This document shows, piece after piece, positions 21,769-45,312 of a DNA stretch of 64,000 nucleotides; within the stretch, counting starts at the first letter, position 1; each line of letters opens with the position of its first letter. Both the position numbers and the translations under genes were made by a program. The stretch spans positions 2,914,001 through 2,978,000 of the forward strand of contig JBLDXI010000042.1 in the NCBI GenBank assembly GCA_047495785.1, given 5' to 3'. This DNA comes from Lepidodermella squamata. Its lineage: Eukaryota > Animalia > Gastrotricha. Below the pieces are notes generated by a model, which saw only the letters and a list, made by a program, of their open reading frames with translations, did not search any database and was not told where the DNA came from.

Positions 21769-22213
21769 CTAATCGAAGTTGGTATCGCTATTTCGACCAA
21801 TTATTTCTTGTGCCAAATACTGCGCCCAAGTGTTGAATGGAACGCGATTTTCGCAGATTGCAGCGCCAAGAGCTGCCTGACACTTCTGCATGCGGAATCT
21901 TTGGAAAACTCGCTGCTTTGAAGCAAGGGGCAGGCTCTTGAATGCTTCCACCGATGCAGCCATAGTATTTCTGTAATCTGTGAAAACTATAATAAAGCAC
22001 TATGATAGTTGCGCTGAATTGTCAAACTAACATACCATCCGCAGATTTTCGGTTAAGCGAATAAATGCTACTTTGCTGGCCGTTCCTTCCCGAAGGGATC
22101 AAGCTAGGAGATGAAGATTGCTGGAGAATTACTATTTCTGGCCTTGCTTCCAGTTTTTTCCAAATCGCCGAACTTCCGAGAAACTTGGATTCGACCTGCA
22201 TCCCAAGAAGCAT
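21769..22213 (-). CDS. Secreted two-cysteine family member A
   Basis: Exons 22213-22036 and 21977-21769 (phase-1 58-nt intron). C-terminus FRMQKCQAALGAAICENRVPFNTWAQYLAQEII. The signal peptide is weak and the start uncertain. Confidence 0.72.
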
Positions 22214-22449
22214 GGATAGCCTCTTTAAATATTAATGACTCATGAAACGTCTTCAAGATGAAATTTTTTAATTTCAAGCTCGGCAAAAAACTCTTTCACC
22301 TGGAATTTTTCGCTTTGCCTGTGTTGATAGAAATGGCGAGGCGGTTGTGTCACGCTGCTGAAAAAACGTGATGGCGCCTCACGAATAAAAAACAAAGGTA
22401 CAAGGCTTGTAGCTGTTAGTAGCTGAAATAAACATCTCCGAAAGAAGCT

Positions 22450-23222
22450 ATGAAAGCAATTTTGGCGCTGCTAACATTTTCAACCCAGGCTATACTGCTT
22501 ATCTCAGGCAAGCCTTCATCTCATTTCACGTTTTTGGTAATTACTGATCATAGTTGTATTTAAATTGAACAGGTGACCCGGTTAACGGTGGGTTGATATT
22601 AACTTTCTCTGTTTTCTTTACTCTGTTGATGAAAAATAGCTGATAGGCAAAATATAACTCCGGAGTCCGATGATGATCAAACGCAGCCTACCGTATTTTC
22701 GCAAGCATTGTTTTGATCATTGTCATTCGATATTCTATTAAGGTCACACTTGAAACGACGACCAAGTGGGCTTACGTAACGCTGGAGCCGGCGGATTACT
22801 TCGCCGACATCAACCCCTTTCGTACTCTTAAAACTACATCTACTCCTGCTCCAAACGAAGGCAATACTGTGACCAAATGGCAATACGTTACGCTAGGGAC
22901 GGTGGGTGATGATTACTTCGCCGGCTTCAACCCCTTTCGTACTCTTAAAACTACATCTACTCTTGCTCCAAACGAAGGCAATACTGTGACCAAATGGCAA
23001 TACGTTACGCTAGGGACGGTGGGTGATGACTATTTCGCCGGCTTCAACCCCTTTCGTACTCTTAAAACTACATCTACTCCTACTCCAAACGAAGCCAATA
23101 CTGTGACCAAATGGCAATACGTTACGCTAGGAACGGTGGGTGATGACTATTTCGCCGGCCTAAATCCTTTTCGCAGCAAGGTAACCGTGAAAAGTACGAC
23201 CAGCCTTCGTCCAACCAGTTAA
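22450..23222 (+). CDS. Secreted Thr-rich repeat protein with 4 TKW.YVTL...DYFA..NPFR motifs
   Basis: Signal MKAILALLTFSTQAILLIS. Proposed introns 22508-22572 (GC-AG), 22588-22639 and 22693-22742 are frame-consistent. Last exon 22743-23222, with AATAAA downstream near 23310. Confidence 0.7.
22812..23173 (+). repeat. Coding tandem repeat, about 3 x 117 bp (39 aa)
   Basis: Near-identical units encoding NPFRTLKTTST(P/L)(A/T)PNE(G/A)NTVTKWQYVTLGTVGDDYFAG(F/L). Confidence 0.93.
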
Positions 23223-23432
23223 ACCTGGCGATCCTGAGACAAACGGTAATGGGAGCCATGAAAAATAAGACGTCACATGTTAATCAACTTTTATTCGAAC
23301 TTAAACGATAAATAATTAATAATTTAACAAACTTTAACATGTGAATTTGAGATCCGTTGAAGTAAAGCCTTATTTAACTCGACCGGGAAGGATTTGTGTG
23401 TGAGCGTAGAAAGAGGCCTGCCGCTGATGGAA

Positions 23433-23898
23433 TTAAAGCCGCCGCGTTAGGTCAGTTAGTGAGTCATCGTACTTTCCAGACATGATTTCCTGGGCTAAAA
23501 TTTGAGCCCAGATGTAATAAGCGACCCTGTTTTCACATATCTGTGGAGAGCGGAGGATAGCCAAACATTTTCGCATTCTGAGTAGATTCATGCCATATTC
23601 CTTCAACGAAGCCGGTAATTTTTCGTAGTCAGCTGGTGATTTTTCCTTGATTGCTTTGAGTAACAAATTCACTGTTGTAATAAATGAAAAATTCAGTCAG
23701 AAGAGAGCGATCATTCGCAGATATCTTACCATTAATAGAATCGCTCCGGTGATGCCTGGGGTTTGGATTGCGGGATGCCAAGAAGCCGGTGCCCTTAGGT
23801 GCAGACTCTGATGCCGCATCTGCAGGAAAAAGAGCGCTGCTGCACTGCGCCACAGTCACACAAGCGCTGCAGATCAGAAAAATCCAAGTTGAAAACAT
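23433..23898 (-). CDS. Secreted two-cysteine family member B
   Basis: Signal MFSTWIFLICSACVTVAQC. Phase-1 intron 23729-23672. C-terminus LRMRKCLAILRSPQICENRVAYYIWAQILAQEIMSG. Confidence 0.85.
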
Positions 23899-24609
23899 GT
23901 TTGCGTGTTTTTTGGCACTATACTGGAAAGAAAATGATAGTCATAGCAGCTTTATACTCTTTACAGCATCGCTATCTAATTACATGCGATCATTAAGATC
24001 AAAATGATAGCGCAAAAAACAAGCTAATCACATTATTTTGAAGGCAGCTTTGCAAAAATAGTGTCAAGTAGGTGTGTGTGAGCTATAATAAATATTGTGC
24101 GTTAGATTACTTGCTAATTAAATTCCATATAGGATGTATGGACTAATGATTATGTTTTGTCCATCATTCTGAAATCAGGTATCGGAACGGATTGAAAGCT
24201 TGAAAGCATGTCTTCTCGTCCCACAGAATTTGCACAATCTGTTTGTTTCCTCAAGCATATCATTGTTGTGCCAACAGAACGGATGGGCCGCTTGAGAGCT
24301 TTATCAAGGGTTCTTGGCGCTTAATCATCGCTCAAGTCGATAGGGAGCCCTGGCGCAGCCAAAGCAAACGCAATTAATCGATGAAAATGGTGTTCGACTG
24401 AAGTAAATGAAGGAAGAAAATGTTACCAGGCAACAGTCTCGGTTCAACACAAGACAGGTGTCTACGCAGTGCTTTCCAGAAAATCGTTATGTTCCTTTGT
24501 TCGGCTGCTGCATTTTTTATAACGGATTAACATTTTTTGCGCAATTATCGACAGTATATTTGGAGAAAACCAACATTGTCTCATCGAATGCTGTGTTTTC
24601 TATAGAAAT

Positions 24610-26239
24610 ATGGAGCGAAAAATATCCCTCTTGTGGTATTTTCTGATATCAGGAATAACAGGTTAGCTGCGGAGGTTTGTAACAGTGAGATTTTTAATGT
24701 CAAATACTTATTCCAGCTCAAACACCGAACTCGCCGCAGATTGTTACATATGACAGAAGTGAGTCAAACTCAATGCTTGTCAATTACTCCTAAAAATCTT
24801 GTCTTTTAGCTACTAAATGGCCATACATTACTTTGGAGCCAAGAGGTCCAGATTACTTTGATGATTTGAATCCGTACCGAACGAAGATCACAACAGTAAG
24901 CACGACTACACCCCGGCCAACAGGTTCGACCTATCCCCCAGCTGCCGATGTCTATCAATGTGATTTCGATGTCGGCATATGTGGTATGATTCATGACCCC
25001 ACGGCTTCGTTCAATTGGACTCGCCGAGATGGAAAAAGTCCACATGCCTACACTGGTCCGCAAATCGGAGATCATACGACAACGAAAGGATTTTATGTCT
25101 TCATCATCTGCTCAGATCCTCGAGTCACCGGAATGCAAGCTCGTTTGATCACACCTGAGCTGGTCACCACAACCGGATGTGCTAATATTTCGTTTTGGTA
25201 CAACGCCTATGGAGCTCATTTGGGTCGTTTAACTGTAAAAACCTTTGAGACAACAAACCCTGGCAGCGTGAGCAACGTTTTTGAAATCAGCGGCCCAGAT
25301 GACAATCAAGATTGGCGATTTGCAAGTGTTGTAGTTCCTGCATTGAAATACAAAATCATATTCGAGGGCGTAGTTGGAACTGGTTATATGGGCAACTATG
25401 GTCTGGATGACATTCTTGTTCGATCCGCACCTTGCCCCGCTACGACACCATCGCTCAATGGCTCAGCTCAAGTGTTCATCCCCGGCGACATTACAACACC
25501 TGCGCCAAGTGGCTTGCAAGCTTGGGCTATCACTTTGATCGCAGTGACTATAATCGCAGCCATCGCCGCCGTTGCGCTGGCTGTTTACTTGGTATACCGA
25601 CAAAAGAAACTCCGCCACTTGCGCATGATTGAAGAAAGGGAGGAAGAAGAGCGAAGAAAGCGTGAGATCGAGGAAGATGGGATTATTCACACCGATAGGT
25701 CGTATAGTACCCGAGTCAGGACAGGGAACCCTGGTGTCGATAGGCCGCAAGGCCGGATGCTGCCATCAGCCCAGCGACGTCTTGCGCCTGGTTACGGCGC
25801 TCGTCCAGGCTCCCGCATGGGTTCGGCTTACAACAGAGTGGACATTCCAGCGAGCGCAGTTTCGAAACGAGGTCACTCTCCCTCAGCTCTTGCTCTCCAC
25901 GAATCTGGCCCTGGGAACACAGAGTATGGCTACGACCAGGAGGTTGACAACACTGCTCGATTGAGATCGGCTGCTCGAATCCAAATCAACCTGGGTGAAA
26001 ACGAACAACCACCTGTACCGCAGATCTCGCAACCCGCCCGCCTGCCAACGATTTTTGGAGGCGAAGAATCTCCACCACCCACTCGTAGCGCCAGTCGTAA
26101 AACAGAGATCACAGTAAGTGATGCAAGTCCTATTCCTGATCGTCGGGGAGATATCGGACAGCCAGCAACAATGCGTCCTGATAGTACACCTAAGAGTACA
26201 GCAACAGGCAAGGCTGAAAAGATGCAATGGTACGATTGA
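24610..26239 (+). CDS. Type I membrane protein MAM-2 with an N-terminal TKW...NPYR motif
   Basis: Signal exon 24610-24661 (MERKISLLWYFLISGIT), introns 24662-24716 and 24759-24809. Then TKWPYITLEPRGPDYFDDLNPYR, a MAM domain (CDFDVGIC, GPQIGDHTT..GFY, ARLITP, FWYNAYG, GLDDI), TM WAITLIAVTIIAAIAAVALAVYLVY and a cytoplasmic tail. Confidence 0.88.
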
Positions 26240-26744
26240 ACGGATACTGGGAATACTCGGATTGTATTAAACATTTGTTTCTGTCTTTTATCCTATTTTC
26301 ATGTATCTTCAATTTCATGCATGCTTATTTTCTAATATTCCAGCTCGAAGTTAATCATTTTCTTCATCTGACAAAATCGGTTTTCTCTTGTTTCACATGT
26401 CTATAATAAACTCATATGCATCTTCAAGAAAGATAGTCGAGGTTCAAACCACGCGTCGCTCAGGCGTGTTTACATTCGCAGGTCAGAAAAATAGCGATGA
26501 GATATGGATTTTTGCTTACATTTTTTTGCGCCGACACATGCGTGCAAGTTGGTTCATTAAAGTTTAATAGGAAAAAAAGGAGGTGGAAGCCGAGGCCTGT
26601 TCGCACGGTTGCGTGTCTGCATTGAATAAAAAATTGAGTTGAGGGAATGCAGCAGGCATCCCGTTGTTAGCGACCCGACCGATTTGGGCTTTTAGAGAGA
26701 TCAAGGTCCCACCATCTCTTGATCTCTATGAGACTCTAGAAAAT

Positions 26745-29032
26745 ATGAACACTTTCGTTATTCTTACCCTTATGCTGCATTTAACTGCAGGTAGGAGTTA
26801 CAATGCGTTCCACTGCACTCCTTATGATATAAAATACTCTTTAGGTCAGCAATTGCCCTTGGCTCTATACGATGAGGAAGAAGAAACGCGGACAACGAAA
26901 GAATTGCAGCCAGAAGATCGGGTTCGGGAAAGCTACGTCTACACAGCTCACCCTTACATACCAGTCGTAATTTTGCTGCCACGATCAACCACTCCAACGC
27001 TACCTGGTTCGAAGCCAGTTGTAGTCCAGAGTAATAGCGATGATGACCATGAAACAGGCCAATTAGCTACAGAACGGCCTAGAATACCGCAGCCTGCCAT
27101 TCCTACCTATCGCACGAGGTTTGCAATGCCAACTGCGAAAACAACTCCTACCCCAGCGCCGAAAGTCGTCATGGCAGCGGGTGACCCTGATACCAAACGA
27201 GGCATCGTCATATGTACTTTCGATGATAGTATGTGTGATTTCACCCACGACTCATCTGTTCCAATGAGATGGTCGAGACGCAACATTAAAGCGCCTCCCA
27301 GAACAGGCCCTGAGCGGGACCATACATCTGGGAGTGGGTATTATCTTCTTTTTGATATTCAAAAGAATCCGAAAGGCAACGTGGCTCGTCTCATCAGTCC
27401 TGAATTGTTCACACCCACTGATTGCATTATCATCGAATTCTGGTATTACGCCTACGGCAGTCAGCTTAATCGGCTGACCGTCAAAACAATAACTACAGCA
27501 GATGGAGTTGAAGATTTAACGACAGCTTTCGAGCTCATCGAACCGAAGGAGATTCCAAAAGCCTGGCAACAGGTTCGTGCTACTATGAAGCTGTACGATG
27601 AGCGATATCGAGTAATTTTCGAGGCCGAAGCTGGGGACGGGCCGGAGGGGGATTACGCGATCGACGACGTCACGATCAGGGCAGATGGCTGCCCAGCTGA
27701 AATTACTAGACGACCTTTGGCGAACCGAGCCAGCGCCAGCCCTGATCTACGCCAAGTCGACAAAATGAACTACCGCAATGTTACAACGACTGCGTCACCT
27801 GCTTCTGCAAGCGCACCAGCTTTATCCCGTAAGTTTGAATTTTTGCTAACTGAATTATGAATAGTAACGCCTGAACTATTCCTAACATAACAGCTACTGC
27901 AATAGCTGCAATTGTTATAGTTATAGTCATCATTCTTGTCGCTGCAATCCCTCTGAGTATGTTTCTATGGAAAGTATATGGCCGCAAGAAAAGAGCAGCG
28001 CTGAACGGAGGGTAAATATATATATTTGTATGGCTTTGCAATATAGAGAGAATTTTTTTCAGAGGTCCGAATCACTCTGATCGCAACCGTTCGACACCTT
28101 TGAATGAAATGCCCGATTCTGCCCGAACTGAGAGAGACATTCCAATGACAGAAGCCAATCGAAGTCGTCCCCCAACGGCTGCAGTGGCTGCTAGACCGAG
28201 AAAAGCTGCAACAGCCGTAACTGAGCAAACAAGCGAGATTCAGGGGTATGACCAGGCCGATAACCTTGGCTACTTGAAGCACGCGGAGCAAAATGAAGGT
28301 CAAACACTTGACTCAGCAGAATTAGCTCGGAAGCTAACCGACGTATCGATATCTCTGAAAAACGCGCCGAAATCTGATAACGACCCTGCTAAAGCTTCGG
28401 CTGTCATTGATAAACCAAAGGAAGTCACAGAGGCTTCGGTTGTTGCGAAATTAGATAAATCCTTAGATCGCGTTCTTGGCGACGCTTCGGTAACTTCTAC
28501 CCTCACATCTAGCGGCAGCGGTACTTGGTCAAGTTTCGACGCAAATTTTGCTGTGCCCTCTCCCACCGTCGTTCCCGCGGAATGGGCAGCTTCAACATTC
28601 GATGATAAGATGATTGCACCAAATCCTCACACTTTTGTGCCAATCGATCCGCCAGCTGCGCCGAGCTCTAATACTCCGTTCCACGAAGACCTGACAAAGT
28701 CCAAGGCTGACTTGCACGATGTAGTTTTGAATAAGGACGAAGCTCCCACGGATAATCCGATTGCTTTTGATAATTCGAATTTTTTCGCCGCCCACTCAGC
28801 CAAACCCAGCAAGCCAGTGCAGGAACCGTGGTTTGCCGAGAGCAATAACAGCACCACCATGTACGAATTTCCTAATTATGGCGATTTTCATGCTAGCATG
28901 AGCAGTAATCGGTGGCATTTGAGTAACTTCATGATCAACGAGGAGGAACGGGGCAATCCATCACCTGAGACCCATGACGTTGCGAAAGAAGCAAAACCGC
29001 AGGTGAAATCTTCTAATGAATCGGTGATATAA
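26745..29032 (+). CDS. Type I membrane protein MAM-3
   Basis: Signal MNTFVILTLMLHLTA, Pro/Thr-rich stalk, MAM domain (CTFDDSMC, GPERDHTSGSGYY, ARLISP, FWYYAYG, AIDDV). Intron 27829-27893, TM exon (TAIAAIVIVIVIILVAAIPLSMFLW-KVYGRKKR), intron about 28012-28062, tail to 29032. Confidence 0.86.
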
Positions 29033-29212
29033 AAACTTTAGTGGTGAGAAATCCTTGACATTTGGCGATTCTGGCTTTGCGAATAATTAAGGAAACGAGG
29101 ACGAATAAAACAAGCGTGTGTATTTTACTTCTAAGCACAATTGAGAATCATACAAATCACTGACTCCTATATCAGTCTTCAATTCCATGATATATAGCGA
29201 TATCCTGTAATT

Positions 29213-29467
29213 TTAATGCTTCATTTTTTCCTCCCGAGCCTTCTGACGAAGAGATGATTGGCCGAAAGAACCCCTAGCATTGCTTGGAATCCGCTTGAAA
29301 CGATCTGACGACCATGCGCTGCGATGAACGACCGGGGAAGCGTATTGTCTCAGGTGATTAATCCTGCTCAGAGCTGCATAGTCCTCGCCACTTCTTGCCT
29401 CTGAGTAGACCATGCTAGCAAAGCAGGCAAAAAGAAGTAGGGCAAAAAATAATGCTTTAATTTCCAT
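29213..29467 (-). CDS. Prepropeptide P1
   Basis: Signal MEIKALFFALLLFACFASMVYS. KR site followed by IPSNARGSFGQSSLRQKAREEKMKH. Single exon. Confidence 0.75.
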   Translation of the reverse strand: MEIKALFFALLLFACFASMVYSEARSGEDYAALSRINHLRQYASPVVHRSAWSSDRFKRIPSNARGSFGQSSLRQKAREEKMKH

Positions 29468-30138
29468 TTGCTCCAAAATAAAAGTCGAGAATTAGCAGAT
29501 ATATGAGAGTACGAAATCAAGCGGAATGTCACAATTATCGGGGCAGGATGCTGCTTAAATACTGAAAATCCCCGCCTCTTCCCAAGGGTGCGCAAATCTA
29601 TATAATTAATAGCTTTGTTCTGCGAGTTACATCACTTCCGTTAGTGCTTTCACGGCTAATCCCATATGGAATTGCCTAAGCAAGTGATGAAAATTGCGGA
29701 AATGAAGCTCTGTGTGCCTACAAAACGAAGATTTTACAGTCATACTATACAACAGAGTCTCAAAATCATTATTGCGTCAAAACATCTGATTTGATGGCAT
29801 TCTTATGTATTAAAAGATGACTGAAATCGGAAGCCGGTAAAAGGAGCCTAAAAATTATTAATAGCGCTAAGTATCAAAAGGAATAATTTCAATGGAATAT
29901 ACTCATCGCCGTGGCGCTATACAGCATATTCCACTATTTCCTACGTCAGTTCTAATAAAAGGTTTGCTCTGGAGTATTTGATCCTTTCATAGTAAGTGAG
30001 CGTGACAGATACGGATACGATAAACAGTTTACCTAAGAAGTCGTATCCTTAAAAGCCAACTGCCAGACAGATCTAAAGAACGATACTTCGCTCCTTCTAA
30101 GAAACAGTCTATAGTTGCTTTGCAATTTGCAATTAAGA

Positions 30139-32113
30139 ATGCTTAAGGATTGGAAGCATTGTCTCGATGAAACCGATATCGAAATGGCCGCGACCACCAA
30201 GGTGAGATAAGATACTTTATGGACTATAGTGACTTTCTCCTTGTATATATCGTCAGCTCCATGCCATGCGTCGATGGTTTGTTACAGGAGCCGTCATAAG
30301 GCGAACGATTTGGGGATTACTAGCTTGCCTCAGCATCGGCTCGTGGATATACGTCATGCGAGAGCGAGTCGCATTTTACCATCTTTACGCTCTTGTTACA
30401 AGCTATTCTGTCGAATATCCGCAGGTATGCTATGAGTTCATACGCTCGCAATAGGTTTTCTATAGCTCAGTAATCTAGAGTGTGCCGTTTCCAGCTGTCA
30501 CCGTGTGCAACATGAATATGTTTACAAGTTCGTCACTTTCTGAGATCGAGAGGAAACTCCTGCGAGATGTTGGAAAATCATTTTTCAATGACCTCAAGCT
30601 CCTCAAATCAAGCTCAATGAGCCAAGAAGGGCTCAACAGATCGGCTTTTCAACTTTACGACGATTACGCGATAAGGGAGGCTAAAATTATCGGAAACTCC
30701 ACCTTTGACCTCGGACATTTTATCGATTCCAAAGGATGGGAAATTTCAGATAACAATTTGATTTGCTCCTTTGCTGGAGAGCCTTGCTATTCTAGCGATT
30801 TTAGCGCAGTGATGACGAGGTATGGTAAATGCTACTCCTTCAATGCCGATAACACTCAAGCACAAATAGTCCCTGGTCGAAGTTCAGGGTTGCGCATCTA
30901 CATCAACGTTGAAGAGGTTATCAATTGAAAGCCAGACAGATAATATAAATGTATTGTATGATAAGGATGAGTATCACGAATTCAACATAATGGGCGAAAT
31001 TCAAGAGGAGGTCGGAGCTATGATCTATGTCCACCATCCTTACGAGCCTCCGAACACTGGTCTTGCGGCTTCGCCTGGTTTCGACATGCTCGTTCCATTG
31101 AAAATGAACATTATGACAACTATCAACACACCGCCTTGGAACAGCTGTGGCGAAGGACCTATCGGCCCCTATAAGGAATATTCGATTCAGGGATGTCAGG
31201 CACTATGCGAGTCAAATTACTACGCAGCTGAAGATTTTTGCACTTGTAGGCCATGGTATCTACCTGCAGTGGAAGAAGGAAACTCAACTTTGCCTGTTTG
31301 TTCAATTTCCAAGGGCATTTTTTGCGCTAATTGGGTCATAAGTACACTCTCTATTACGATGTTTGCATTTTTTAATTACCTTTTTCATTAGACGGTAATC
31401 ACCACGATCATTGTCGATCTAGGTGCGAAGAAGCATGTTCAGCTTTTAGCTATGAATTTAGCTCAAGCTATTCGAAAATGGTCGGTGTTCCGATTCCAGC
31501 ACACAACTACACAGCACAGTATATTCAAGACAATTGGCTTCGAATTAGTGTTTATTTCGCAGACTTGGTCGTAGATTCAATCGATGCTGACACCGCGATA
31601 ACGATTAGCGGCTTGCTGTCCGATTTCGGAAATTTCATGTCGATGTTTCTCGGCTTCTCCGTGGTAACCATGTTCGACCTTGTGGAGTATCCTGTGCTTA
31701 AGATATATCGACAATGCATAAGGCCGAGTTATCGAAGAGCAAGAGCCTATAATGCAAAAGTGAGGCGGAGAAGGGATCCTGTTTACACTGCAAATGAACC
31801 TGCTGATAAGGTAACAGTCGATTCTTTTACGAAGAATGTATGGAACAAAGGTTATAGAGCGTACAGCGTGAGTTCTAATTTTGATCACCAAAAACAACCA
31901 ATAAATCGTTTTTATTAGTGGTTGGACAAATATGCGCATTTCAGCTACTTCGGACGATCCAAGCCTAAAGTGTTAAAAGAAACGCATGGCGCAAGAGGGA
32001 AACCCGCCAGCAATGTCTCGGTTGATTCTGCCATGCCCCGATACCGCAGTTGGTCGATAAGCAGTTGGGCTAAACAACTAACAGACAGAAAAGTAATTCT
32101 CAAACGTTTCTGA
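30139..32113 (+). CDS. DEG/ENaC (ASIC-like) ion channel subunit 1
   Basis: Spliced MLKDWKHCLDETDIEMAATTK|LHAMRRWF, TM1, FPAVTVCNMN, YGKCYSFN, GL.IYINVE, Cys-rich thumb, TM2 GLLSDFGNFMSMFLGFSVVTMFDLVEY. Five short introns. Confidence 0.93.
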
Positions 32114-32226
32114 GCAATTTCATTGAATGATTAACGTTTCACTTTTATTTCTGCAAAACTCTTTTGAAATGTAGTAGCTGTGAAGTGACAAGGTAACAGC
32201 GGGGTTGTGGTTTACAAGAATATGAA

Positions 32227-32616
32227 TCATCTATTTACCTTCCCATTTAAGATATCACGAGCTAGGATCTGAGCCCATAGGTAAAAAGTAGCATTGTTCT
32301 CGCAGATTTGCTTCGAGCCGATTCGCTCAACACATTTGCGCATGCGAATTTTTTGAATGATCCGCTCGCACATCTTGTCAAGGAGATTGTTAAACCTGGC
32401 CTCGCCCATTTTTTCTCGTTCACTCGTTGCGTAGCGTGTTTCGATTATTGTCCGACAAAGCGCAATATCTTTCAAGTCAGTTGTTCCTGACGCTTGGCTC
32501 GAGGCTAGATGATCATCTTGAGAAACTGGCTGGCCGGGTGTTTGATTGGGGTCAACAGCTGATGAGTAAGCTAAGAACAATGATAGAGCAATCAACCGGG
32601 AATTTTCAAGCAGCAT
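32227..32616 (-). CDS. Secreted two-cysteine family member C (apparently intronless, 2 extra Cys)
   Basis: Signal MLLENSRLIALSLFLAYSSA. C-terminus IRMRKCVERIGSKQICENNATFYLWAQILARDILNG. Confidence 0.85.
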   Translation of the reverse strand: MLLENSRLIALSLFLAYSSAVDPNQTPGQPVSQDDHLASSQASGTTDLKDIALCRTIIETRYATSEREKMGEARFNNLLDKMCERIIQKIRMRKCVERIGSKQICENNATFYLWAQILARDILNGKVNR

Positions 32617-33147: not shown

Positions 33148-33357
33148 ATGAGAGGCTTTGCTATCAAGGCAACAATTTGGCTGTTGTTTTTGGCGATGGC
33201 TGTTGTGACGATGGTGGAGATGCGCCAAGCACCAGTGAAGCTCGCCTACTTCAGCGATTTCGATGAGCGGAAGACCGCGGGAGAACCTGTGTCAGTCAAA
33301 CGCAGTTTCGGAAAGGCCTGGATGCGTAAAATTGGGCGAGGACACAATGACAATTAG
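33148..33357 (+). CDS. Prepropeptide P2 (predicted SFGKAWMRKI-amide)
   Basis: Signal MRGFAIKATIWLLFLAMAVVTMVEM, spacer, then KR-SFGKAWMRKI-G-R (possible amidation signal). Confidence 0.78.
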   Translation: MRGFAIKATIWLLFLAMAVVTMVEMRQAPVKLAYFSDFDERKTAGEPVSVKRSFGKAWMRKIGRGHNDN

Positions 33358-34537: not shown

Positions 34538-34744
34538 ATGAAAACTGCTTTGGCTTTGTTTTTGATGGCGATTGTTGTAGCCATCGTCCTAATTTCTTCA
34601 ACATCGGCACAGGAAGAAGCTGTCGACATGGGTTTTTTCGGCCGTGATCTCGAAGACGATGGAGTTTGGGTCGGCCAAAAGCGACGATTCGGTAACTACC
34701 TGGCAATGAAAAGCCTCGACCCTCACGATTCCTCAGAAAAATAA
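34538..34744 (+). CDS. Prepropeptide P4
   Basis: Signal MKTALALFLMAIVVAIVLISSTSA, then QEEAVDMGFF-GR (possible pGlu...FF-amide), an acidic spacer and KR-RFGNYLAMKSLDPHDSSEK. Confidence 0.78.
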   Translation: MKTALALFLMAIVVAIVLISSTSAQEEAVDMGFFGRDLEDDGVWVGQKRRFGNYLAMKSLDPHDSSEK

Positions 34745-34866
34745 GTAACCCCTTGTCGAAAACATGTTCACTATACTCATATACATCTTCATTGTAAAAG
34801 TCAGAGAACATTGTTTAAGAAAGTTATGCATTTATTAAGAAAATTAACAAAATAAATAAATAACGA

Positions 34867-36910
34867 TTATAGGCCTGTTTTAATGTTTCCGAAGAATGAA
34901 GGAGTGTTCCCCTCCCTGTCGGAGAAGCTCATTATCGATACTCGACGGCGCTGGTTTGATTGAGATTGTGACATGTACTTCCGCAATCGCGCTGGCTCCT
35001 TTGTTGGTTTGATTATTTGAGGCTTTTCGCGCTTGAAAAAGCCGAAATTCGAGAAGTCATCGCGGTTCTACAACAAAAAGTGTGGCAGTTACTCATTTCC
35101 CTCAAATTAACTTACTTTTTTATGCATTTGACCTGCTAATGTTTCTTTTGTCCAGATATCTATTGCAGATTTATCATCTACTGATTTGCTGACGGTTACG
35201 ATAGGATCCTTGGGTCGTCTTTTCTTTATCCTCTCGCGAATGGCTTTTGCTTTGCGGTACCCAGGTCTTATGCATTGTCGATAGATTTTAAGAAACGGGT
35301 ATTCTATCAAGTCGAACATCGTTACAACCGAAAAACCGATGAACATCGACATGTAATTTCCAAAATCAGCCAATAAGCCATCAATCGTGAATCCGACACC
35401 TGAGTCAATCGTGTTGACAGTGAAACTCGGGAAATGAACGCTAATCTCCACCCAATTGTTGTCAATGTAATCCTGTGATAATTTTTCGCCTTCGAGTAAA
35501 TATTGGCCCGGATTAGGCACGCCCACGAGTTTTGCATAGCTCGTTGCAAAGTCGTATTGATTAGTTGAGCAAGCCTCATCACATTGACAGGCGCTGAGGA
35601 ATTTGTCAGCTGAAAAACTATGCTACTCAAGAGAAATGTTGTCCCAGACAAAAACTTACTGATGACCCAATTGGAGCAAAAAATGGTCCTAGAAACAGAA
35701 CATGGTTGTAGCGAACTGCCAGCTTCTTCGGGCAGAAACCATGGCCGGCAACCACATTGCGGATGAGATGCGTAGGCTCTAACTTGACACAATGCCAAAC
35801 AGCCAGTTACTGAGTATTGATCGTAAGGTCCCAACGGGCCTTCACCACAAGTGTTCCAAGGCTCCCTGTTGATTGTAGTCATAGCTGTAAGCTTCAAGGG
35901 GATGTTCATGTCAAATCCAGGCATCGCCGCCAAGCCATTTTTTAAATTAGGCGGCTCGTATTGCTGATGAATCAAAACTTTAGCCCCTGTGGCGATTTGC
36001 AGCTGACCAACAATATCGTATTTAAAATAATCGCTCTAAAAATGTTGCCGTCATTGAAGCGGAAATAAAAACAATTACTGAGCTATTACCTCTTCGATAT
36101 CGATGAAAAGTCGCAGTCCGTCAAGGCGGCCTGGCACATTTTGAACAAGAGAGCCATTCCCGTTGAATGAATAGCAAACCCCGTACTTCGTGAGGGTTAC
36201 GTTGAACTCTGAAGTAGAGCAAACTCTCGAACCATAGAAGCACCTGATTTTCGCATCATCAACGGACCATCCTTTTTCCAGCACAAATTGCTCCACACTG
36301 AAATCTGTTAAAATTTTTGAGGATCGTATAGGAAGTAGATTGGATTAATTTACTAGTATTCACGATAGATTGTTCAATTGCAGAATATTTTTCCAGAAGT
36401 TGTGCAGCAGTGGCGTTGGCGTCTCGACTATTTGACGCGACAAGTTGCATAATTTCTTTATAAAATGGTCCGGAGACATTTTCGAGGAGAGCCCTGTCAC
36501 TAGCGGACAGTTTTGATGCGCTGAGCATATTCAGGTTGCAGATTGTAACGGCAGGGAATGCTACCTCCTACGATAAATTTCGAGAAAGGAATGATATTAT
36601 AATTTAGCTAGAGCAATCTTGATACTCACTTGAGAATAGACAACGGAATAACTAGTTGAAAGACTGTACAAATGGTACAAGGCTACTCGTTCGCTCATCA
36701 AATAAACCCAGGTGGCAATGGCTACACATGCTAAAATGCCCCACAAAGATCTCCTGATAACTGCTCCAGACACAAACCACCTCCTCATTGCGTGGAACTG
36801 AAAAAGGAAATAGTTGGGGTATGTTTAAAGGAAAGAAGCGAAACCTTGGTGGTTGCAGCCATCTCGATGTCGGTCTCATCGAGACAAGTCCTCCAATCTT
36901 TCAGCAGCAT
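34867..36910 (-). CDS. DEG/ENaC ion channel subunit 2 (inverted paralog of subunit 1)
   Basis: MLLKDWRTCLDETDIEMAATTK|FHAMRRWF, FPAVTICNLN, YGVCYSFN, Cys-rich thumb, TM2 GLLADFGNYMSMFIGFSVVTMFDLIEY. The last exon ends ...KTGL-TAA at 34867. Confidence 0.93.
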
Positions 36911-37237
36911 TTCCCTCAGCTGCTAGAGAAAAACCTACCAGTACTCAGGTAGTAAGAAACACGAAATTGCCTGGCTTTCTTGCTGCGTTATAATACTAGA
37001 TGTATGCCGACTGTGTTTTATACATGGAGCTATAAAGCTGTTTATGCCACATTACTACGTGGTCAAAAGTAAGAGCCTCTTGGCACCTGCAAATGCTAAT
37101 AGCTATGTATACGCCACACACATGGGACTAAACAATAGTCATAATTTATTACGGAATTCTATGCTTGGATTATTAAGGTGTGTTAACTCCATTCAGGAGC
37201 AAATTCAACGACTTAATTTAAATAGTCTGAAGATGGT

Positions 37238-37432
37238 TTATTCGGCTGGCTGGCGATTACGGAATCTTTCTCCGAAGGAAATCGGTCGTTTAGCCATGAA
37301 GAATGAATTAATGATTCCTTCGCCGTCTTCTGGACCTTCGCTACGGTCTCCATTTGCTTCAATCATGACGGCTAAGGTGAAAATTGCAGAAAAGCAAAAG
37401 AAAACTTTGAAGAGAAAATTAGAGAAGTTCAT
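37238..37432 (-). CDS. Prepropeptide P5
   Basis: Signal MNFSNFLFKVFFCFSAIFTLAVMIEA, acidic spacer, KR-PISFGERFRNRQPAE. Confidence 0.78.
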   Translation of the reverse strand: MNFSNFLFKVFFCFSAIFTLAVMIEANGDRSEGPEDGEGIINSFFMAKRPISFGERFRNRQPAE

Positions 37433-37819
37433 TTTCCCGTATTTTTTGAGATGTACTGCAAGCTCGATACGAAATTTATTTTCGTTTATAATGTCCGTTA
37501 ATGTCCAACAATAAAACCAACAGCTCTCTAATGTCCGTTTATAATGCCCTACAGCAATAAATATCAATTGGATGCGGAAGTGCGTCAATATAAGATAATT
37601 ATTGGACCGGGACGATTTGCGCATTGGTAAATCAAATTAGAAACTAGCGACTCGGCCTAAATCATTTTGTGGCAAGTGACAAGCTGTCAGCCATCACGAA
37701 CCGGGGTTTTACCATGACGTGCTTGGGAACATCACGGGTGTAGAGAAAAACACGTGTTCACTTGGCAAGAAAAACATCAGGATAAGTTAGGACGCTGGGC
37801 CATAATTTCCGTTTGAAAA

Positions 37820-38086
37820 TCACATGTTAGGAGCGATGTTTTGGGACATTTTGAACCGCCGCTTGTCACCGCCGCCACCGTTGCCTCGGCTTAATTCATA
37901 CAGGAGTGCTAGTTCAGCCTCGCTAGGTCCGTTTGATGCATCGTTATCCGACGTGGCTTCTGGCACAGGCTCGTCGAAACCTTCAGGATTGTAATGATCA
38001 TCTTCGGCAAGAGTGTTCAGGGGCTTCTCTAGCAGAACCATCAAAGCCACAGCAAATGATAAACAAGCAGCAAATGAACCTTTCAT
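37820..38086 (-). CDS. Prepropeptide P6
   Basis: Signal MKGSFAACLSFAVALMVLL, long acidic spacer, KR-RFKMSQNIAPNM. Confidence 0.75.
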   Translation of the reverse strand: MKGSFAACLSFAVALMVLLEKPLNTLAEDDHYNPEGFDEPVPEATSDNDASNGPSEAELALLYELSRGNGGGGDKRRFKMSQNIAPNM

Positions 38087-39809
38087 TTTAAGAATATATG
38101 CCGAACAATGCCTGTAAAAAAGTATTTTAAGCAGAAGAACGGAGAACAAATTCAAGTGACTATCTGCACTTATATCAATATTAATTAAATCGATATATTG
38201 TGATTTTACTGCGATTCTCTTGAATTGTAATATAGGTGTATTTACTGACAGAAATAGCGAAAAACTGGCGACCGAAATAACGGGAAAATTAAATCTGCCA
38301 CATAAGTGGCAATGTTAGGAATGCACTTGCCGGTTTTTAATTGCAAAACACTAGAAGGATCATCCGTTTCTTTAGAAATAATACTATTAATGGATGTCTT
38401 TCTTCGATTTTTTCTCGTTCCATTACAGATTTGGCTAATGAGCGCGTCTGCACGTCTGCCCGCTCTACTACGCAAGCTCAGCGCTTTCTCCCGAAAGAAC
38501 TCGCTTGGGTATTAACCCGATTCATGCTGCGTCGGGTTCTTTGACATTTTGATGATATTTGTGCCCAGGATTATTCTTTCTTTTTTTCATCGCTGAACAT
38601 CGCTTGAACCGAAACGAGAGAATCATCGAAAATAGTACAACAATGTCAAAGTCCCTTTTATATGCACTTTAAATCTCGACGGAAATAAGAATGCAAACCA
38701 TCATTCATTAATTCATGCAAGTAAATCAATGCTGATAACTGATTTGAAAACCCATGTTGTCGAAAGAATAGTCCGGCATGGCTTGAGGAAAACCGAAACT
38801 TCTCAGTAATTTTTCTTTGTAAGTCAAGTTGTTGTAAGATTTCTGCAAAAGCATTATTTAACAGAATACAAACTAAATAGCGGCCCAAGATATTTTTACC
38901 AGCAAAAAAGACGGAAGCTCAGTCGTCGTAGTTGTACTTGAAAATGGTAATGCTTCAAATAGCTCGACAAATAGTGTTGCAATCACAGCGGTCGCAAGGA
39001 GAACAGAGCTGAAAAGTCGCCGAAGTTTGCTTGAAGCCATTCATGTAGTCAAAACATTCATTTTTGTAGTTGAAATTTGTATGAAGCAACCTTACTATGC
39101 CATGTACATGACAAGCACTCCGCGCACAAAAAATACTACCAGTACGCGAGCAGGTGAAAAAACTATTGTTGGCCGTATTGCTCATGTTAAACAACGCTGG
39201 AAACCGTGATGATGAATGGTTCCATATCATGCGAGAACGGCTCGCGGCAATAGGCGCCTAACTGCTTATTCAAAAATTGCAGGGTAAAAAGCGCCCAATT
39301 GAACACCGGATATGATGTCCCTTTCGCCGAATGATTGCCCTATAATTGACATGCCATGAAATTTACCTTGGAAAACAAATTAAGGTGTGAAATCGAGAGG
39401 CAATTTGATGTTCCGTAGTTCAACCGCAAACAAGGCGTTAACAAGCCTAATGAGCTTATTATTTCCCCACTCGACCGGAGGCCCTATCTTAATTGCGAAT
39501 TTCAGCAGCTAATTTAAATTTCAGCTGCGCATCGAAAAGGAGAGTTTGAAAATGATCCCTAGATGTCTCATTAACTTTACCTCCGCTATAAATACTACGA
39601 ACAACTAAGACCCAGCGCCATTTGCCAGCTCTTTGCCAGTTGTTTAGCATTTTAGTGGGGACCGGGAAGTGTTTGGCTACAAGTCGTTTAGCTCTATGCT
39701 AACACGGCGATGCAGGTTTCCTGTTAGGGCATCACAGCCATCTACTCTTTTGCAACTTTAACTAATGGCCTCCTTTTTATTTGCGAATACTAATAGTTAA
39801 CGTTAAATA

Positions 39810-40244
39810 ATGATCTGCTACAACCTCGTCAACGTTGTTGTTTCGATTTTGCTCCTGGCCTCAAGTTATGCTCACGAATTGAAGCCTTCTTCCTCCTCGG
39901 AATTACCCAAAGGGCACCTCCCTGTGAAAAACAAAGATCCAAAAATATTGAATTCGTGGCGACATTCCAAAGGTATAAAAGCAATCATCATAGGTCTCTT
40001 GGCTAATAAACGTTTCCTCCTCTCGGTAGATGTGAAAGCTTATCTCAGCAGTCTTGATGTAGAAGCGGCGAGGCAACTGGTGAGGCATGTGCTTGCAAGT
40101 ATTCAATACAAAAAGCGTTTCGATAAGTGCTTGAAGGTGCTTAAATCGCTTGACATCTGCTCACAACGGCAGCCTTTTTACCTATGGGCGAATGTAATCA
40201 GTAAATCCATAATGAACGGTGAAGAGCTATTTGTTATAAGATGA
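39810..40244 (+). CDS. Secreted two-cysteine family member D
   Basis: Signal MICYNLVNVVVSILLLASSYA. Probable in-frame phase-1 intron 39973-40029. C-terminus KKRFDKCLKVLKSLDICSQRQPFYLWANVISKSIMNG. Confidence 0.82.
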   Translation: MICYNLVNVVVSILLLASSYAHELKPSSSSELPKGHLPVKNKDPKILNSWRHSKGIKAIIIGLLANKRFLLSVDVKAYLSSLDVEAARQLVRHVLASIQYKKRFDKCLKVLKSLDICSQRQPFYLWANVISKSIMNGEELFVIR

Positions 40245-40874
40245 AACACAAACTTCAAAGAAAAGTATTGCATTCATTGTATTTTTGCTGATTTTTACGA
40301 TATAAAGCAATTGCTTTTGTTACGTGTGACTGGAATTGTTTACAACTTTGTTGTGATATAATTTGCTATCTGGTTATGAGACATAGGTCATCAGCATAAT
40401 TTCGCCTCCCCATGGCTGCTTAAGCTTCCTAGCTAGACAGCTTGGCGCTAATCATTCCGTTTTTCGACATAGAGGTTTCCCATATATGAAAACTGGTTCG
40501 CCGGATAATTCGTTATAAAAGAATTCTAAAATAGGATTTTAATGAAGTTGAGTCGGAGCGTGGCCAATTTCACAAGTGGGAATCCCCCGCATGCGTCGGC
40601 TCATGAAGCCTTTTCGGCATCCGACAAATCTATTTGTTCCCGACCGAGTTGAAGACTTGCAGTGAAAAGAGACGTTATGCATTTTATATTGAAGGTGAAT
40701 TTTGTACTAATTATACTGATAACAGTGGGATATCAGCGTCCCCGCCTTTTTCAAAGTCGCGGCTATATTTAAGCCTGATAGTATCTATCTTCAGCAGAGG
40801 AGTAGCTTAGCTTAGCAAATCGCGCCTGATTTCAGGAGTATCTATTTAGCACTTGGCAATTTACCAGAATCTGT

Positions 40875-41328
40875 ATGGCAATGCAGTACTATCTTGTATG
40901 CGTAATACACCTCCTGCTGACAATTACTAGCGATGTCAACGGCGATCCACTTCAAGAGTCTCCCAAGTTCAGTGAAATAGCTGCATCTCCCAGAATTATC
41001 TCTCAATCCGAAATTGCTCCGATTGTCGCTCTGTTAAAATACGGTCAGTTTTCTATGGTTAGCATATTTTGATTATCTCGTTTGCTTCACGAATTTTTTA
41101 GACAACAAGTTGGCAGGAAAATTAGCCGGCGTGGATCCGACCGAGTTTGCCATCGCATGGTGGAACTCTATGACCCCAGAGATGCGTGCTCGCGTTGTTT
41201 ACGAAACGCGATTGCGCAAATGCATAGCGCACCTTGGATCAAGAGCTGTGTGCGAAAATAATTCAACTTTCTACTTGTGGGCGCAAATGCTGGCACGAAA
41301 AATAATGACAGGGCAAATTGATAAATGA
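40875..41328 (+). CDS. Secreted two-cysteine family member E
   Basis: Signal MAMQYYLVCVIHLLLTITSDVNG. Phase-1 intron 41044-41101. C-terminus TRLRKCIAHLGSRAVCENNSTFYLWAQMLARKIMTG. Confidence 0.85.
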
Positions 41329-41397
41329 ATCAAACGCTTCGCTCTTTCAAGCAACGTTTGATTTTGATTTCATGAAAAAGATGGCTGGGCCAAACGT

Positions 41398-41402
<5 letters not shown>

Positions 41403-41439
<37 letters not shown>
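41403..41439. repeat. (GT)18 microsatellite
   Basis: Perfect GT dinucleotide run. Confidence 0.97.
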
Positions 41440-41441
<2 letters not shown>

Positions 41442-42134
41442 TTTTGTGACGTGTAAATATAATTGCATGAGGAAGAATAAAGAAATAGCTGATAAGCTGA
41501 CCTTCGATTTTTGTTGTTCAATCTGCTTATTATCAAAATAAAACTCTTCCAAGCTATATAACTTAAACGCCAATTTCGAAGCAAGCAATCATACGTACGT
41601 CCGTTGTCGTCTGTGAGACAGATATCAAGGTTATGCATGCCTTACTTCATGGAGGATTTTATATTTAAATTTATAGCCTATTTTCTGATTTGCCAATTTC
41701 TAATCAGGTGGGACGTTGATGTTAATATCAATGAAATGAGCGAGTAAGCAAGGTAGACTTATGACGGTAAGGCTGACGCACTATAATTCTCAATCTAATC
41801 AGAAATGATTATTCGATTACTCGATATTAAAGTCTGAATTCAAGCTGTCGATGCAAACGTCAGGGACATGGCAATGATGCCTGGTCATGACTCAGTCCAG
41901 AGCTTGCGGAGTAACTCAATCATCATAGTATGAGCGCCTGGATGCCACGCATACAATTTTTAAGATAAGATGTGTACAAATTTGAAGTGTTAGGTTTCTT
42001 AGTTCACGTATGATAACACAAATTAGGCGTAGGAAGGTGATTGCTTCATGTCGACCCTTCGAGATTAATATTTTCTGCGTGTTCTTGACCATTTACGTCT
42101 CGAGTGCGAGTTTCGATTACTCGTTTGCACCAAC

Positions 42135-45100
42135 ATGACTCATCTACATTGGCTGGCAACCTTTGGGCTAATTTATATTTTATTGGTAGCATTATTTGGA
42201 GAATCCGCATGCGATCCGGCACTCTCGACTAACACGGATGCTGTCGGCTTTGTTGATGGTGAGTTTATCATAGAGAACAGAAGTACAAGAGAGGAAACTC
42301 GCGCTGGAAACTTGAAACATTAATTCGAAGCGGTTTTTTTAAGCCGGATCTTTTCACAAAATGCGCGTAGTTTTTTAGCGCACTTTTCTCGCGCAAACCC
42401 ACAAAATTTCGGCAAAGCTTTTCTCCGGCTTTACTACTTCAAATCGGATTCCCCTTTTTAAGGTGAATAGACCTGGTCTAGAACTTCAAAATTGCAAAAG
42501 GTTGAGCCGATATATGCAACGGCTAAGCCTTGGCACCCTTCTGAAGCTGAAAAAATTTAGCGAAAAATTTCGCAAAAATAGCTCATTTTCGACGAATTTT
42601 TTCGTCGAACGGTGTGTCGCCGATTTTGACGAATTTTTGCATGGAGATAGAGAATGCTTTGAACTACTTAACCCCAAAGGGGCGGGTCCGTATACGCAAT
42701 AGCAAATTTTCAGGATCTCTTCGAAGGAAACCTATTTTTCATGATATTGCAACCATCTCTTACAAAGTTCTACCATCTTTATCTTACTTTATGAGTCTAA
42801 ATTTTTAAAGTCTTCCAGTTGAGCTTTTTACGCCTTCATTATAATGGTCAGCCATTGCTAGCCTGTGCTCCGATTCGATCAATCAAGAAGAAAATCTGCC
42901 TGTTTAGACTAATTTTGAAACAAATAATTTCAATCGTTAGCCGCCGTTAGGTAAATGCTCGCTTATCGATCTTGAGAAATCCGAGTCCTTTCTTGAGCAC
43001 TTTATCCTCATCTTTGGTCAACTAGAAGGGGCAAAGAATTTGCGTGAATTGAAGCTAAGTCTCGCCCCTAAGAAAACTGGAGGGGTAGAAGTACTTCAGC
43101 CCCTTTACGGCTCCTTTCCGTACCTCTTGGTACACCTTTAAAATCAAAAACTCTTGTCAATATGCCATCTTAGAAAAGTTCTTCTAAGCATTCAGCCCTC
43201 TTCGCCCTCTTCATCAAAAATTTCCTTTTTCATCGCAGCAACCAACATTTAATTTACCGTATTATACGAATTATTGGGCAGGACCGAATTATAGGGCAGA
43301 AACGGAATAAAGGCAGAGGGCAAAGGTCATTTGAAATAATAAAGGGTAGAACCGTTATAATGGACAGGGCCCAGGGCCTCATAATACGCGACCAACCTTC
43401 ATTGTGGAACCACTAAAAAGTTGAACTATGGCGCGCGCGCTGATTGGTCAATTTATTGTTGCTATGACCCGGGATGAAACATTTCTGTCGTGCGATCGAC
43501 TAATAAAATATTTTATATTTATGTACAAATTGACCTTGCCACACCCTCTGCACGGTTTCCATTGACCACGAGCGTAAACTCCATATTAATCGTGGCAAAT
43601 TACTTCGGCAAAAAACACTTGTTCAAAAACTTTTATGGATCGCACGACTGAAAGTTTCATCCGGGAGTCATAACAACGACCGATTGACCAATAGGCGTGC
43701 GAGTCAAGATTGTACTTTTGAGTGGTTCCACAATGCTTAGGCGCGTGTCGTGTCCATTTGAAACGAAAAAAATGTCAGTCTACTTCCTTCATGGCTAAAA
43801 GAAAGTTATCGCTATCTCCTACGACATATACAAATAGGTGACATCCCACTATAAAACGAGCTTTGAGCTTTGAGAAACTCAGCTGACCGAATTCCAAATA
43901 AAATCAGGTGATGAGCAGAGAAAGCAGTAATGGGCTCCGAGGAGCAAATAAGCAAGAAACAATTGGTCACATAATAGGTCACATAATAATCCAAAATTAT
44001 TTTCCAGTCTCGAATTAAGTTGATGTGCTTTCATTTTGTAACTCAACTAACAACTCAACTCATCAAGGCTTATTGGTTGCATTCGTACCAGCTGGCTGTT
44101 GCTAGTTCTACTAAAGTCTGTCATCAATAAGTCATCAGTTAGGCTCCATCGTACTTCGGGACCTTGGCTATATTAAATCTTGAAAGTCGCCATAGTACCA
44201 AATATATAATTAATATTTGATTTTTAATAGGTTAGTTATTTCCCTAGAGGTAGCTATTTTGTACCATTCTGTATGTCCAGATGCTATTTTTTCGCTAAAA
44301 CTAGCCAGAAAATATACGTAAAAATGCAATGGTTGAGCCGACGAGTGGCAAGCGGCCATTATATAGGTCATAACTAACGGTAAACAAATAGCCATCTTCG
44401 GTTTTGGACCCATAAAATCGGAAAAATAGCTTGAGGTAGGCATGTAGCGATGGAGTAAACTTTAATTTTTGATCGAACCAACTGGGTTGGTGTGCCAGAT
44501 GAAAATTTTACAACAACAGGATATCACCGAATGACGATTTGCCGCTGTGAGAACAGCTATTTCCACGCGCATTATGTGAAAAAGTGGGTGTTCCTCCAAC
44601 ACATCCTGAAAATTTGCTATTGCGTATACGGACCCGCCCCTTTGGGGTTAAGTAGTTCAAAGCATTCTCTATCTCCATGCAAAAATTCGTCAAAATCGGC
44701 GACACACCGTTCGACGAAAAAATTCGTCGAAAATGAGCTATTTTTGCGAAATTTTTCGCTAAATTTTTTCAGCTTCAGAAGGGTGCCAAGGCTTAGCCGT
44801 TGCATATATCGGCTCAACCTTTTGCAATTTTGAAGTTCTAGACCAGGTCTATTCACCTTAAAAAGGGGAATCCGATTTGAAGTAGTAAAGCCGGAGAAAA
44901 GCTTTGCCGAAATTTTGTGGGTTTGCGCGAGAAAAGTGCGCTAAAAAACTACGCGCATTTTGTGAAAAGATCCGGCTTAAAAAAACCGCTTCGAATTAAT
45001 GTTTCAAGTTTCCAGCGCGAGTTTCCTCTCTTGTACTTCTGTTCTCTATGGAGTTTATATAACAATATGGTATCATTGAGCTATTTTTGTGTTTTTAATG

Positions 45101-45312
45101 CAGTCATTACCACTCATGCTTTTGGAGAAATTGACTCAGCTACTATTTCAAAAATCGCCAAGCAAATAAAATCAAGAAGAGCCATGTATCTTCGAGTATT
45201 CAAGTCCTGCATGGAAGCTTTGAACTCTTATCCAGCTTGCCAAATGAAAATCGGCCGCTATATAGCTCAAGCAAGTGGGAAATTGTTAGGAGTGAAGAAC
45301 GCTCAGCTGTAA
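42135..45312 (+). CDS. Secreted two-cysteine family member F (divergent), with its intron expanded by a transposon
   Basis: Exon 42135-42258 (signal MTHLHWLATFGLIYILLVALFGESAC), phase-1 donor GTGAGT at 42259, acceptor at 45103. Exon 45104-45312 ends RVFKSCMEALNSYPACQMKIGRYIAQASGKLLG (C-x9-C...Y-I-A-Q). Confidence 0.68.
42269..45050. mobile_element. Non-autonomous DNA transposon, 2782 bp, with 448-bp TIRs and an 8-bp TSD (hAT-like)
   Basis: 42269-42716 is the reverse complement of 44603-45050 (CATAGAGAACAG...CTGTTCTCTATG). Direct repeat GAGTTTAT at 42261-42268 and 45051-45058. No transposase ORF inside. Confidence 0.92.
43385..43748. mobile_element. Nested MITE-like element with about 110-bp imperfect inverted repeats
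   Basis: CATTGTGGAACCACT (43400-43414) pairs with AGTGGTTCCACAATG (43721-43735). The match continues inward to GTCGTGCGATC / GATCGCACGAC. Outer boundaries are approximate. Confidence 0.65.

Follow-up and report, generated by a model that had tools for sequence, protein, structure and literature searches.

The closest described counterparts of the gene family reported here come from several systems. Saposin-like proteins such as NK-lysin, the amoebapores and the caenopores are small (~80-100 residues), all-helical secreted proteins, stabilised by disulfides and often cationic, that belong to lineage-expanded multigene families; they carry six cysteines in three disulfides, adopt a five-helix fold and are recognised by the Pfam model SapB. 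In the calcitonin/CGRP/DH31 peptides (~32-35 residues), basic residues stand directly before a cysteine ring of the form C-x4-6-C, an amphipathic helix follows, the C-terminal amide derives from a Gly with basic residues, and each genome holds few genes. Cathelicidins, the conotoxin superfamilies and amphibian skin peptides form large tandem secreted families that join a conserved module to a fast-changing region. Against this background we analysed six genes, A to F, in a 64,000-nucleotide stretch of the genome of Lepidodermella squamata (contig JBLDXI010000042.1 of assembly GCA_047495785.1, positions 2,914,001 to 2,978,000), hereafter the window, whose guanine-plus-cytosine content is ~42%. 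L. squamata is a gastrotrich, one of a group of tiny freshwater animals.

The family of genes A to F shares traits with each of these systems and departs from all of them. Saposin-like proteins offer the same small, secreted, helical and cationic format, but the present family has two conserved cysteines, no Pfam match among 59 aligned members and no saposin among its fold matches (best Z 5.3). The likeness to calcitonin-type peptides extends to the basic residues, the ring and the helix; here, however, the ring is x9 (x7-x10 among relatives), neither an amidation signal nor any sequence similarity or Pfam match was found, at least 150 genes exist, and in the predicted structures the would-be peptide forms the core of a larger domain. 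In cathelicidins, conotoxins and amphibian skin peptides it is the N-terminal prepro-region that is conserved and the active C-terminal peptide that varies, whereas here conservation falls on the C-terminal part, which is predicted to be folded, and variation on a short linker and the outer helices. The family is undescribed and has no known relatives by sequence or fold. The reading that we favour, with a probability of roughly 0.6, is that these genes encode a lineage-restricted family of intact, secreted, strongly cationic helical mini-proteins with a mature product of ~90-110 residues.

The six genes were delimited from a program-made list of open reading frames (ORFs) and by direct reading of the sequence, and all six ORFs lie where a preliminary description had placed them. 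In window coordinates they are as follows.

21769-22213, minus strand: gene A; exon 1 at 22213-22036, intron at 22035-21978 (58 nt, phase 1), exon 2 at 21977-21769
23433-23898, minus strand: gene B; exon 1 at 23898-23730, intron at 23729-23672 (58 nt, phase 1), exon 2 at 23671-23433
32227-32616, minus strand: gene C; a single exon of 129 residues with four cysteines
39810-40244, plus strand: gene D; exon 1 at 39810-39972, intron at 39973-40029 (57 nt, phase 1), exon 2 at 40030-40244
40875-41328, plus strand: gene E; exon 1 at 40875-41043, intron at 41044-41101 (58 nt, phase 1), exon 2 at 41102-41328
42135-45312, plus strand: gene F; exon 1 at 42135-42258, intron at 42259-45103, exon 2 at 45104-45312

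The introns of A, B, D, E and F all run from GT to AG in phase 1, and gene C has none. Direct reading thus bore out the earlier count of five genes with a phase-1 intron of 55-58 nt, gene F being included once a 2782-bp element and one copy of its target duplication are removed, which leaves 55 nt. Splice sites in the window were read from the sequence; that the intron recurs in most of the other members examined supports them. Exon 1 of gene B consists of a signal peptide, MFSTWIFLICSACVTVAQC, and a linker, and its exon 2 of the helical module with the motif RMRKC. The same order of signal peptide, disordered linker and helical domain (residues ~45-125, again with RMRKC) is found within the single exon of gene C. 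Gene D has its intron in frame, so that the ORF reads through it, and its module contains WAN and CSQ; gene E has RLRKC. Exon 1 of gene F, a signal peptide and linker, ends in phase 1 before GTGAGT, and its exon 2 holds the most divergent module of the six (VFKSC, C-x9-C, RYIAQ and no Trp). Gene A is also divergent (C-x8-C, FNTW, IIGR); no signal peptide is encoded by its exon 1 (MLLGMQVESKF...), and no upstream exon carrying one is visible. The ORF list and direct reading gave hydrophobic, signal-peptide-like N-termini in B to F; the preliminary description's view of the family as secreted therefore stands for these five genes and fails for A. Secretion of the products in general is predicted from such N-termini. 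Genes B, C, D and E carry the complete set of family features (C without an intron), while A, which has no signal peptide and reads FNTW, and F, which has no Trp, are marginal members. Deviating at conserved positions as well, gene A may be decaying.

All six proteins align over their ~65-75 C-terminal residues, with both cysteines invariant, in a module that reads R-[ML]-x-[KR]-C-x8/9-C-[EQ]-N-x3-F-Y-[LI]-W-A-Q-x-L-A-x2-I-M-x-G. The cysteines are spaced C-x8-C in A and C-x9-C in B to F, and direct reading confirmed the particulars noted earlier, namely x8 in A, WAN in D and RYIAQ without Trp in F. In the window's own assembly (121.2 Mb in 151 contigs) a profile of the module recovered A to F with expectation values (E) of 1e-20 to 2e-29, including 2.2e-23 for A, 7.6e-29 for B, 1.2e-25 for D, 2.3e-29 for E and 1.4e-20 for F; all six were in the training alignment. 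A search with gene C alone, covering 5.8 billion proteins, also reached an independent homologue, P0001 (E 7.8e-12). Given these E-values and this homologue, the similarity of the six modules lies far beyond chance, and the common origin proposed for A to F is upheld by the alignment with its invariant cysteines, the profile scores and the shared phase-1 intron.

The same search showed that the six genes are a small part of the family. At least 150 module exons were found genome-wide, all at E of 1.4e-10 or below, from 321 first-look candidates, so that the original description of a six-member family was a large undercount; a second query of the assembly gave additional loci. Members lie mostly in dense tandem arrays, with 18 in 44 kb on contig C3 and more than 12 on C54:2.02-2.07 Mb, and with several each on C42:4.20-4.30 Mb and 3.00-3.12 Mb. 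Three contig pairs (C25/C26, C43/C103 and C33/C58) carry members with identical E-values at matching relative spacings, which suggests uncollapsed haplotigs or very recent segmental duplications; as the pairs may be haplotigs, the haploid member count may be lower. Most of 25 other loci that we examined consist of a signal-peptide and variable-linker exon, a phase-1 intron of 52-61 nt and a module exon. No fusion to a known domain was seen in the family's longest open frames, which yielded only a subfamily of longer (150-210 residues) single-exon genes with two extra cysteines upstream of the standard module (…YR[KR][KR]C… and …[DNS]C[DSN]N…), located as follows (L043-L052).

C30:767500-772300: longer single-exon subfamily
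C33:925200-929900: longer single-exon subfamily
C46:708200-709800: longer single-exon subfamily

Across this wider family the module takes the form R-[ML]-x-[KR]-C-x7-10-C-x-N-x3-F-[YF]-x-W-[AG]-[QKR]-x-L-A-x2-I-M-x-G, with amphipathic helices upstream and usually a signal-peptide exon and a phase-1 intron. Conservation and charge were computed over the 59 aligned members. Trp is present in 58 of 58, Phe in 55 of 59, Ala in 54, Ile in 52 and the Arg at -4 from the first Cys in 54; both cysteines are likewise conserved, as is the Gly at the end of the last helix. Since these columns are mostly hydrophobic, they are probably core positions. The domain as a whole is strongly basic, with a mean net charge of +7.3.

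Substitution patterns agree with genes that are maintained. In paralogues with unsaturated synonymous divergence (dS), the ratio of nonsynonymous to synonymous divergence (dN/dS) over the whole of exon 2 was 0.07-0.48, and in the near-identical pair L020/L022 (dS 0.04) it was 0.63. From the first Cys to the final Gly, dN was 0-0.07 against a dS of 0.3-1.6 (dN/dS ~0-0.05), and over the 26 codons upstream of this core dN/dS was 0.15-0.56. Purifying selection on the Cys-to-Gly core is very strong, and the upstream helices are less constrained. Among the six window genes dS is saturated; they are old tandem duplicates within a very large family.

For structure prediction and searches the exons of A, B, D, E and F were used separately. 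AlphaFold2 models were made for gene C (42-row alignment) and for residues 40-134 of P0001 (59-row alignment). The gene C model has a disordered linker followed by a helical domain at residues 45-125 with a predicted local distance difference test score (pLDDT) of 88-97; the P0001 model has a mean pLDDT of 93.2, and the range over the domain in both models is 88-98. In P0001 a long helix (8-44) is followed by a second (47-66), a short one (69-72), a loop and a last helix, FYLWAQLLARDIM, at 80-90. The R-x-x-K-C motif (R-M-R-K-C in P0001) lies in the middle of the continuous helix 2 in both models, at pLDDT above 90. The predicted domain, of ~80 residues, begins 45-55 residues before the first Cys, and the motif is not at its edge. 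The C-x9-C disulfide is expected to link the end of the basic helix to the loop before the last helix.

No known family or fold was matched. Pfam returned no family above cut-off for the six genes, ten outside homologues and the 59 aligned members, and none common to more than one of the 59; a sequence profile search of the PDB gave a best E of 0.14, to designed helical proteins. With the two models, Foldseek against the PDB gave E of 2.5 or higher, and VIA-align against 48,161 chains gave Z of at most 5.3, to generic helices or helical hairpins only; the 37-residue N-terminal helix of P0001 matched only coiled-coil fragments. Searches of the ESM Atlas by shape and by features returned no usable match (template modelling score by query at most 0.34). 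We found no description of such a family in gastrotrichs in the literature, and the L. squamata genome paper (PMC11660948) reports no gene-family analysis. The preliminary description's failure to recognise the family is thus matched by Pfam, the PDB and the fold searches, the helical domain itself being confidently predicted.

Relatives do exist outside this genome, all of them unnamed where we looked. An exhaustive profile search of 1.84 billion representative sequences gave 61 proteins at E of 1e-3 or below, 12 of them at 1e-10 or below; one of the 61, the 769-residue repeat protein P0029, was rejected as spurious. These relatives are typically 90-160 residues long, the full-length ones have a signal peptide with the module at the C-terminus, and the ring varies from x7 to x10. 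Each of the 20 that were looked up is an unnamed entry of an ENA metagenome assembly or of Logan, and none comes from an annotated proteome. The contigs that bear the relatives are animal-like in their neighbouring genes, which include INTS1, RPS2, ArgRS and ABCE1. On three of these contigs the neighbour genes are 58-66% (INTS1), 83% (FtsJ) and 69-78% (ArgRS) identical to the orthologues of this genome, from which we infer that the three derive from related gastrotrichs. The closest outside relative of gene C is P0001, with 80% nucleotide identity over the core. So far the family has been seen only in genomes that look gastrotrich-like. Compact animal genomes are represented by 10-30 kb contigs (L032, L033, L034, L040, L041 and L042) in the metagenome samples ERZ23486764, ERZ23486787, ERZ27332993 and ERZ27333047; this is probably gastrotrich DNA that has gone unrecognised among environmental sequences.

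Evidence for transcription comes from public sequencing runs, only two of which contain the stretch, both as contigs: X1 (2015, taken by guess to be RNA) and X2 (DNA). X1 contigs cover exon 2 of gene F at 100% identity, one of them beginning to align at the predicted acceptor with 46 more letters that lie elsewhere, and X1 contigs also lie over exon 2 of gene E. None was found over intergenic DNA or gene D. The word depth of the E and F contigs in X1 is modest, depth there being a poor measure, and no spliced read or splice junction is displayed in either of the two contig-form runs. The pattern in X1 is compatible with transcription and splicing of E and F and is proof of neither. The Logan contigs carrying P0001 and P0004 were considered as a proof of splicing and set aside; they come from other species, the P0004 contig has no match here and the P0001 contig matches the core of gene C only (80%).

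The intron of gene F contains a further feature.

42269-45050, no strand assigned: non-autonomous DNA transposon of 2782 bp with 482-nt terminal inverted repeats that are 97% complementary

It is flanked by an 8-bp target-site duplication, GAGTTTAT, at 42261-42268 and 45051-45058, and the length of this duplication makes it hAT-like. In the DNA run X2 one contig passes at full depth directly from 42266 to 45078, showing that the element is absent from that allele; the insertion is therefore recent or polymorphic. Within the transposon, at 43300-43740, lies a short inverted-repeat segment with arms at 43400-43497 and 43638-43735, whose X2 word depth is 10,000-20,000 against ~95 for unique DNA. 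This segment is a very high-copy repeat resembling a miniature inverted-repeat transposable element, nested in the transposon.

Other genes of the window lie among the six.

24833-26239: MAM-domain protein gene (Pfam MAM, E 1e-25), with a transmembrane segment and a long cytoplasmic tail
26664-27860: adjacent MAM-domain protein gene on the same strand (Pfam MAM, E 3e-30)
30229-31918, plus strand: DEG/ENaC channel gene (Pfam ASC)
35107-36788, minus strand: DEG/ENaC channel gene (Pfam ASC), paralogous to and convergent with the preceding one

The two channel genes bracket gene C and several small signal-peptide ORFs (e.g., 33148-33357 and 34538-34744). That the family as a whole is linked to MAM and channel genes was ruled out, since the other arrays are too dense to leave room for such genes; with at least 150 members in stand-alone arrays, this adjacency is specific to the window. 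Between genes A and B, at 22713-23222 on the plus strand, an ORF encodes four near-identical repeats of ~38 residues (…TKWQYVTLGTVGDDYFAGFNPFRTLKTTST…) and has no Pfam match. A (CA)n microsatellite at 41393-41450 directly follows the stop codon of gene E, and reads and contigs appear to be cut there.

Taken together, the standard gene consists of a first exon for the signal peptide and a short, variable, disordered linker, a phase-1 intron of ~55-60 nt, and a second exon for a predicted helical domain of ~70-85 residues. Conservation within the domain is highest in a largely hydrophobic C-terminal helix (F-Y-L-W-A-Q-x-L-A-x-x-I-M), which is preceded by a long basic helix. A fixed hydrophobic scaffold may thereby bear many different surfaces, with the linker and the upstream, outer helices free to vary; this idea follows from the mainly hydrophobic nature of the conserved residues and the greater variability of the linker and upstream helices. 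As the most likely role we propose, with low confidence, extracellular binding or defence, directed at membranes or polyanions as in other small cationic helical proteins that have expanded, or service as an abundant component of a surface coat or secretion.

A different view of the same module was implied by the preliminary description, which took A to F for a small family of ligands, whether hormones, pheromones or toxin-like molecules. A convertase would cut such prohormones after R-x-[KR]-[KR] and free a ligand of ~32-45 residues, made of the C-x9-C ring and an amphipathic helix. The R-x-R-K noted before the first Cys in B, C and E is correct to the letter, and among the 59 members Arg at -4 (54) and Lys or Arg at -1 (49) stand directly before the ring; signal peptides occur in B to F and most other members examined, the ring-plus-helix layout recalls calcitonin-type peptides, and DEG/ENaC channel and other small peptide-like genes share the window. 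The segment after the motif is also far more conserved than that before it (dN/dS ~0-0.05 against 0.15-0.56), and in many prohormones the active part is much more conserved than the part preceding it. Yet the second residue before the ring (P2) is basic in only 29 of 59 members and the first (P1) is more often Lys than Arg, the site falls within one unbroken helix, predicted with confidence, of a larger domain, and the helices upstream of it are themselves under purifying selection. After the conserved Gly comes a single K (21 of 57 members) or else N, E, Q or other residues, with many proteins stopping one residue later or at once, and a C-terminal dibasic pair or amidation signal was never found in these 57. 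At least 150 paralogues, many with near-identical "mature" parts, are also unlike known ligand families, and the arrays stand apart from channel and receptor genes; we know of no ligand family with hundreds of paralogues whose active parts are nearly identical. Release at the motif is less likely, given its position within a helix and the inconstant P2, and the notion of a small ligand family is not supported in view of the stand-alone arrays and the missing processing signal. We consider prohormones unlikely. The half-basic P2, the motif within a helix, the constrained upstream helices, the lack of a C-terminal signal and the number of paralogues together favour an intact mini-protein, whose product would act whole and not as a peptide excised at R-x-x-K. 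A bolder variant, in which the family would be a new class of disulfide-stapled ring-plus-helix ligands with hundreds of gastrotrich variants, some acting on expanded receptor or peptide-gated channel families, strikes us as a long shot.

The family might instead supply an abundant structural or secretory material, such as cuticle or scale matrix, adhesive gland product, mucus or eggshell, with copies kept for dosage and long helices that self-assemble. Dense tandem arrays whose cores are nearly identical despite a dS of 0.3-1.6 would suit such a material, as would an N-terminal helix that matches coiled coils and nothing else. Against it, the proteins show none of the low-complexity or repetitive sequence typical of structural proteins, and the X1 word depth of the E and F contigs, poor measure as it is, is modest; we judge this explanation improbable. 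Scarcely credible is the suggestion that the loci are non-functional debris, a dispersed repeat or pseudogene set that resembles a gene family. Gene A without a signal peptide and with deviations at conserved positions, gene F without the otherwise invariant Trp and with a transposon in its intron, and a stop codon within 26 of 150 scored genome matches all point that way. In each of the five stop-containing loci translated (L020, L022, L025, L026 and L028), however, the stop proved to be the natural one, right after ...IM-x-G-[NQ]. Paralogues whose dS is saturated still have start codons, open frames, signal peptides and canonical phase-1 introns, intact homologues occur in other species, and the contigs of the apparent RNA run include exon 2 of both E and F. 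Because dN/dS is also far below 1, these are maintained genes, and for the family as a whole debris is already largely refuted.

Several observations still weigh against an intact, secreted mini-protein. The evidence for secretion consists of hydrophobic N-termini, and gene A has none; the helical fold is a prediction; and transcript support consists of contigs from a run guessed to be RNA, in which gene D is uncovered and no spliced junction is displayed. A prohormone, too, would be expected to show conservation rising abruptly right at the basic motif, and the near identity of the core in many paralogues is as compatible with dosage or structure as with binding.

In poorly sampled animals it is common to find large secreted families confined to one taxon, and so far there is no sign of an unusual mechanism in this one. 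Should the ligand class be real, it would amount to an unusually large lineage-specific code for extracellular signalling or recognition on an undescribed fold, with candidates at hand between the DEG/ENaC genes and the MAM receptors of the window. The confidently predicted helical mini-domain of ~80 residues with a single disulfide should be easy to express and solve. With at least 150 intact genes under purifying selection in a 121-Mb genome, no relative in an annotated proteome and a fold that matches none recognised, the family probably ranks among the major secreted products of the animal. Gastrotrichs are almost unexplored molecularly, and this family may offer an entry to the biology of their surface coat, defence, adhesion or signalling.

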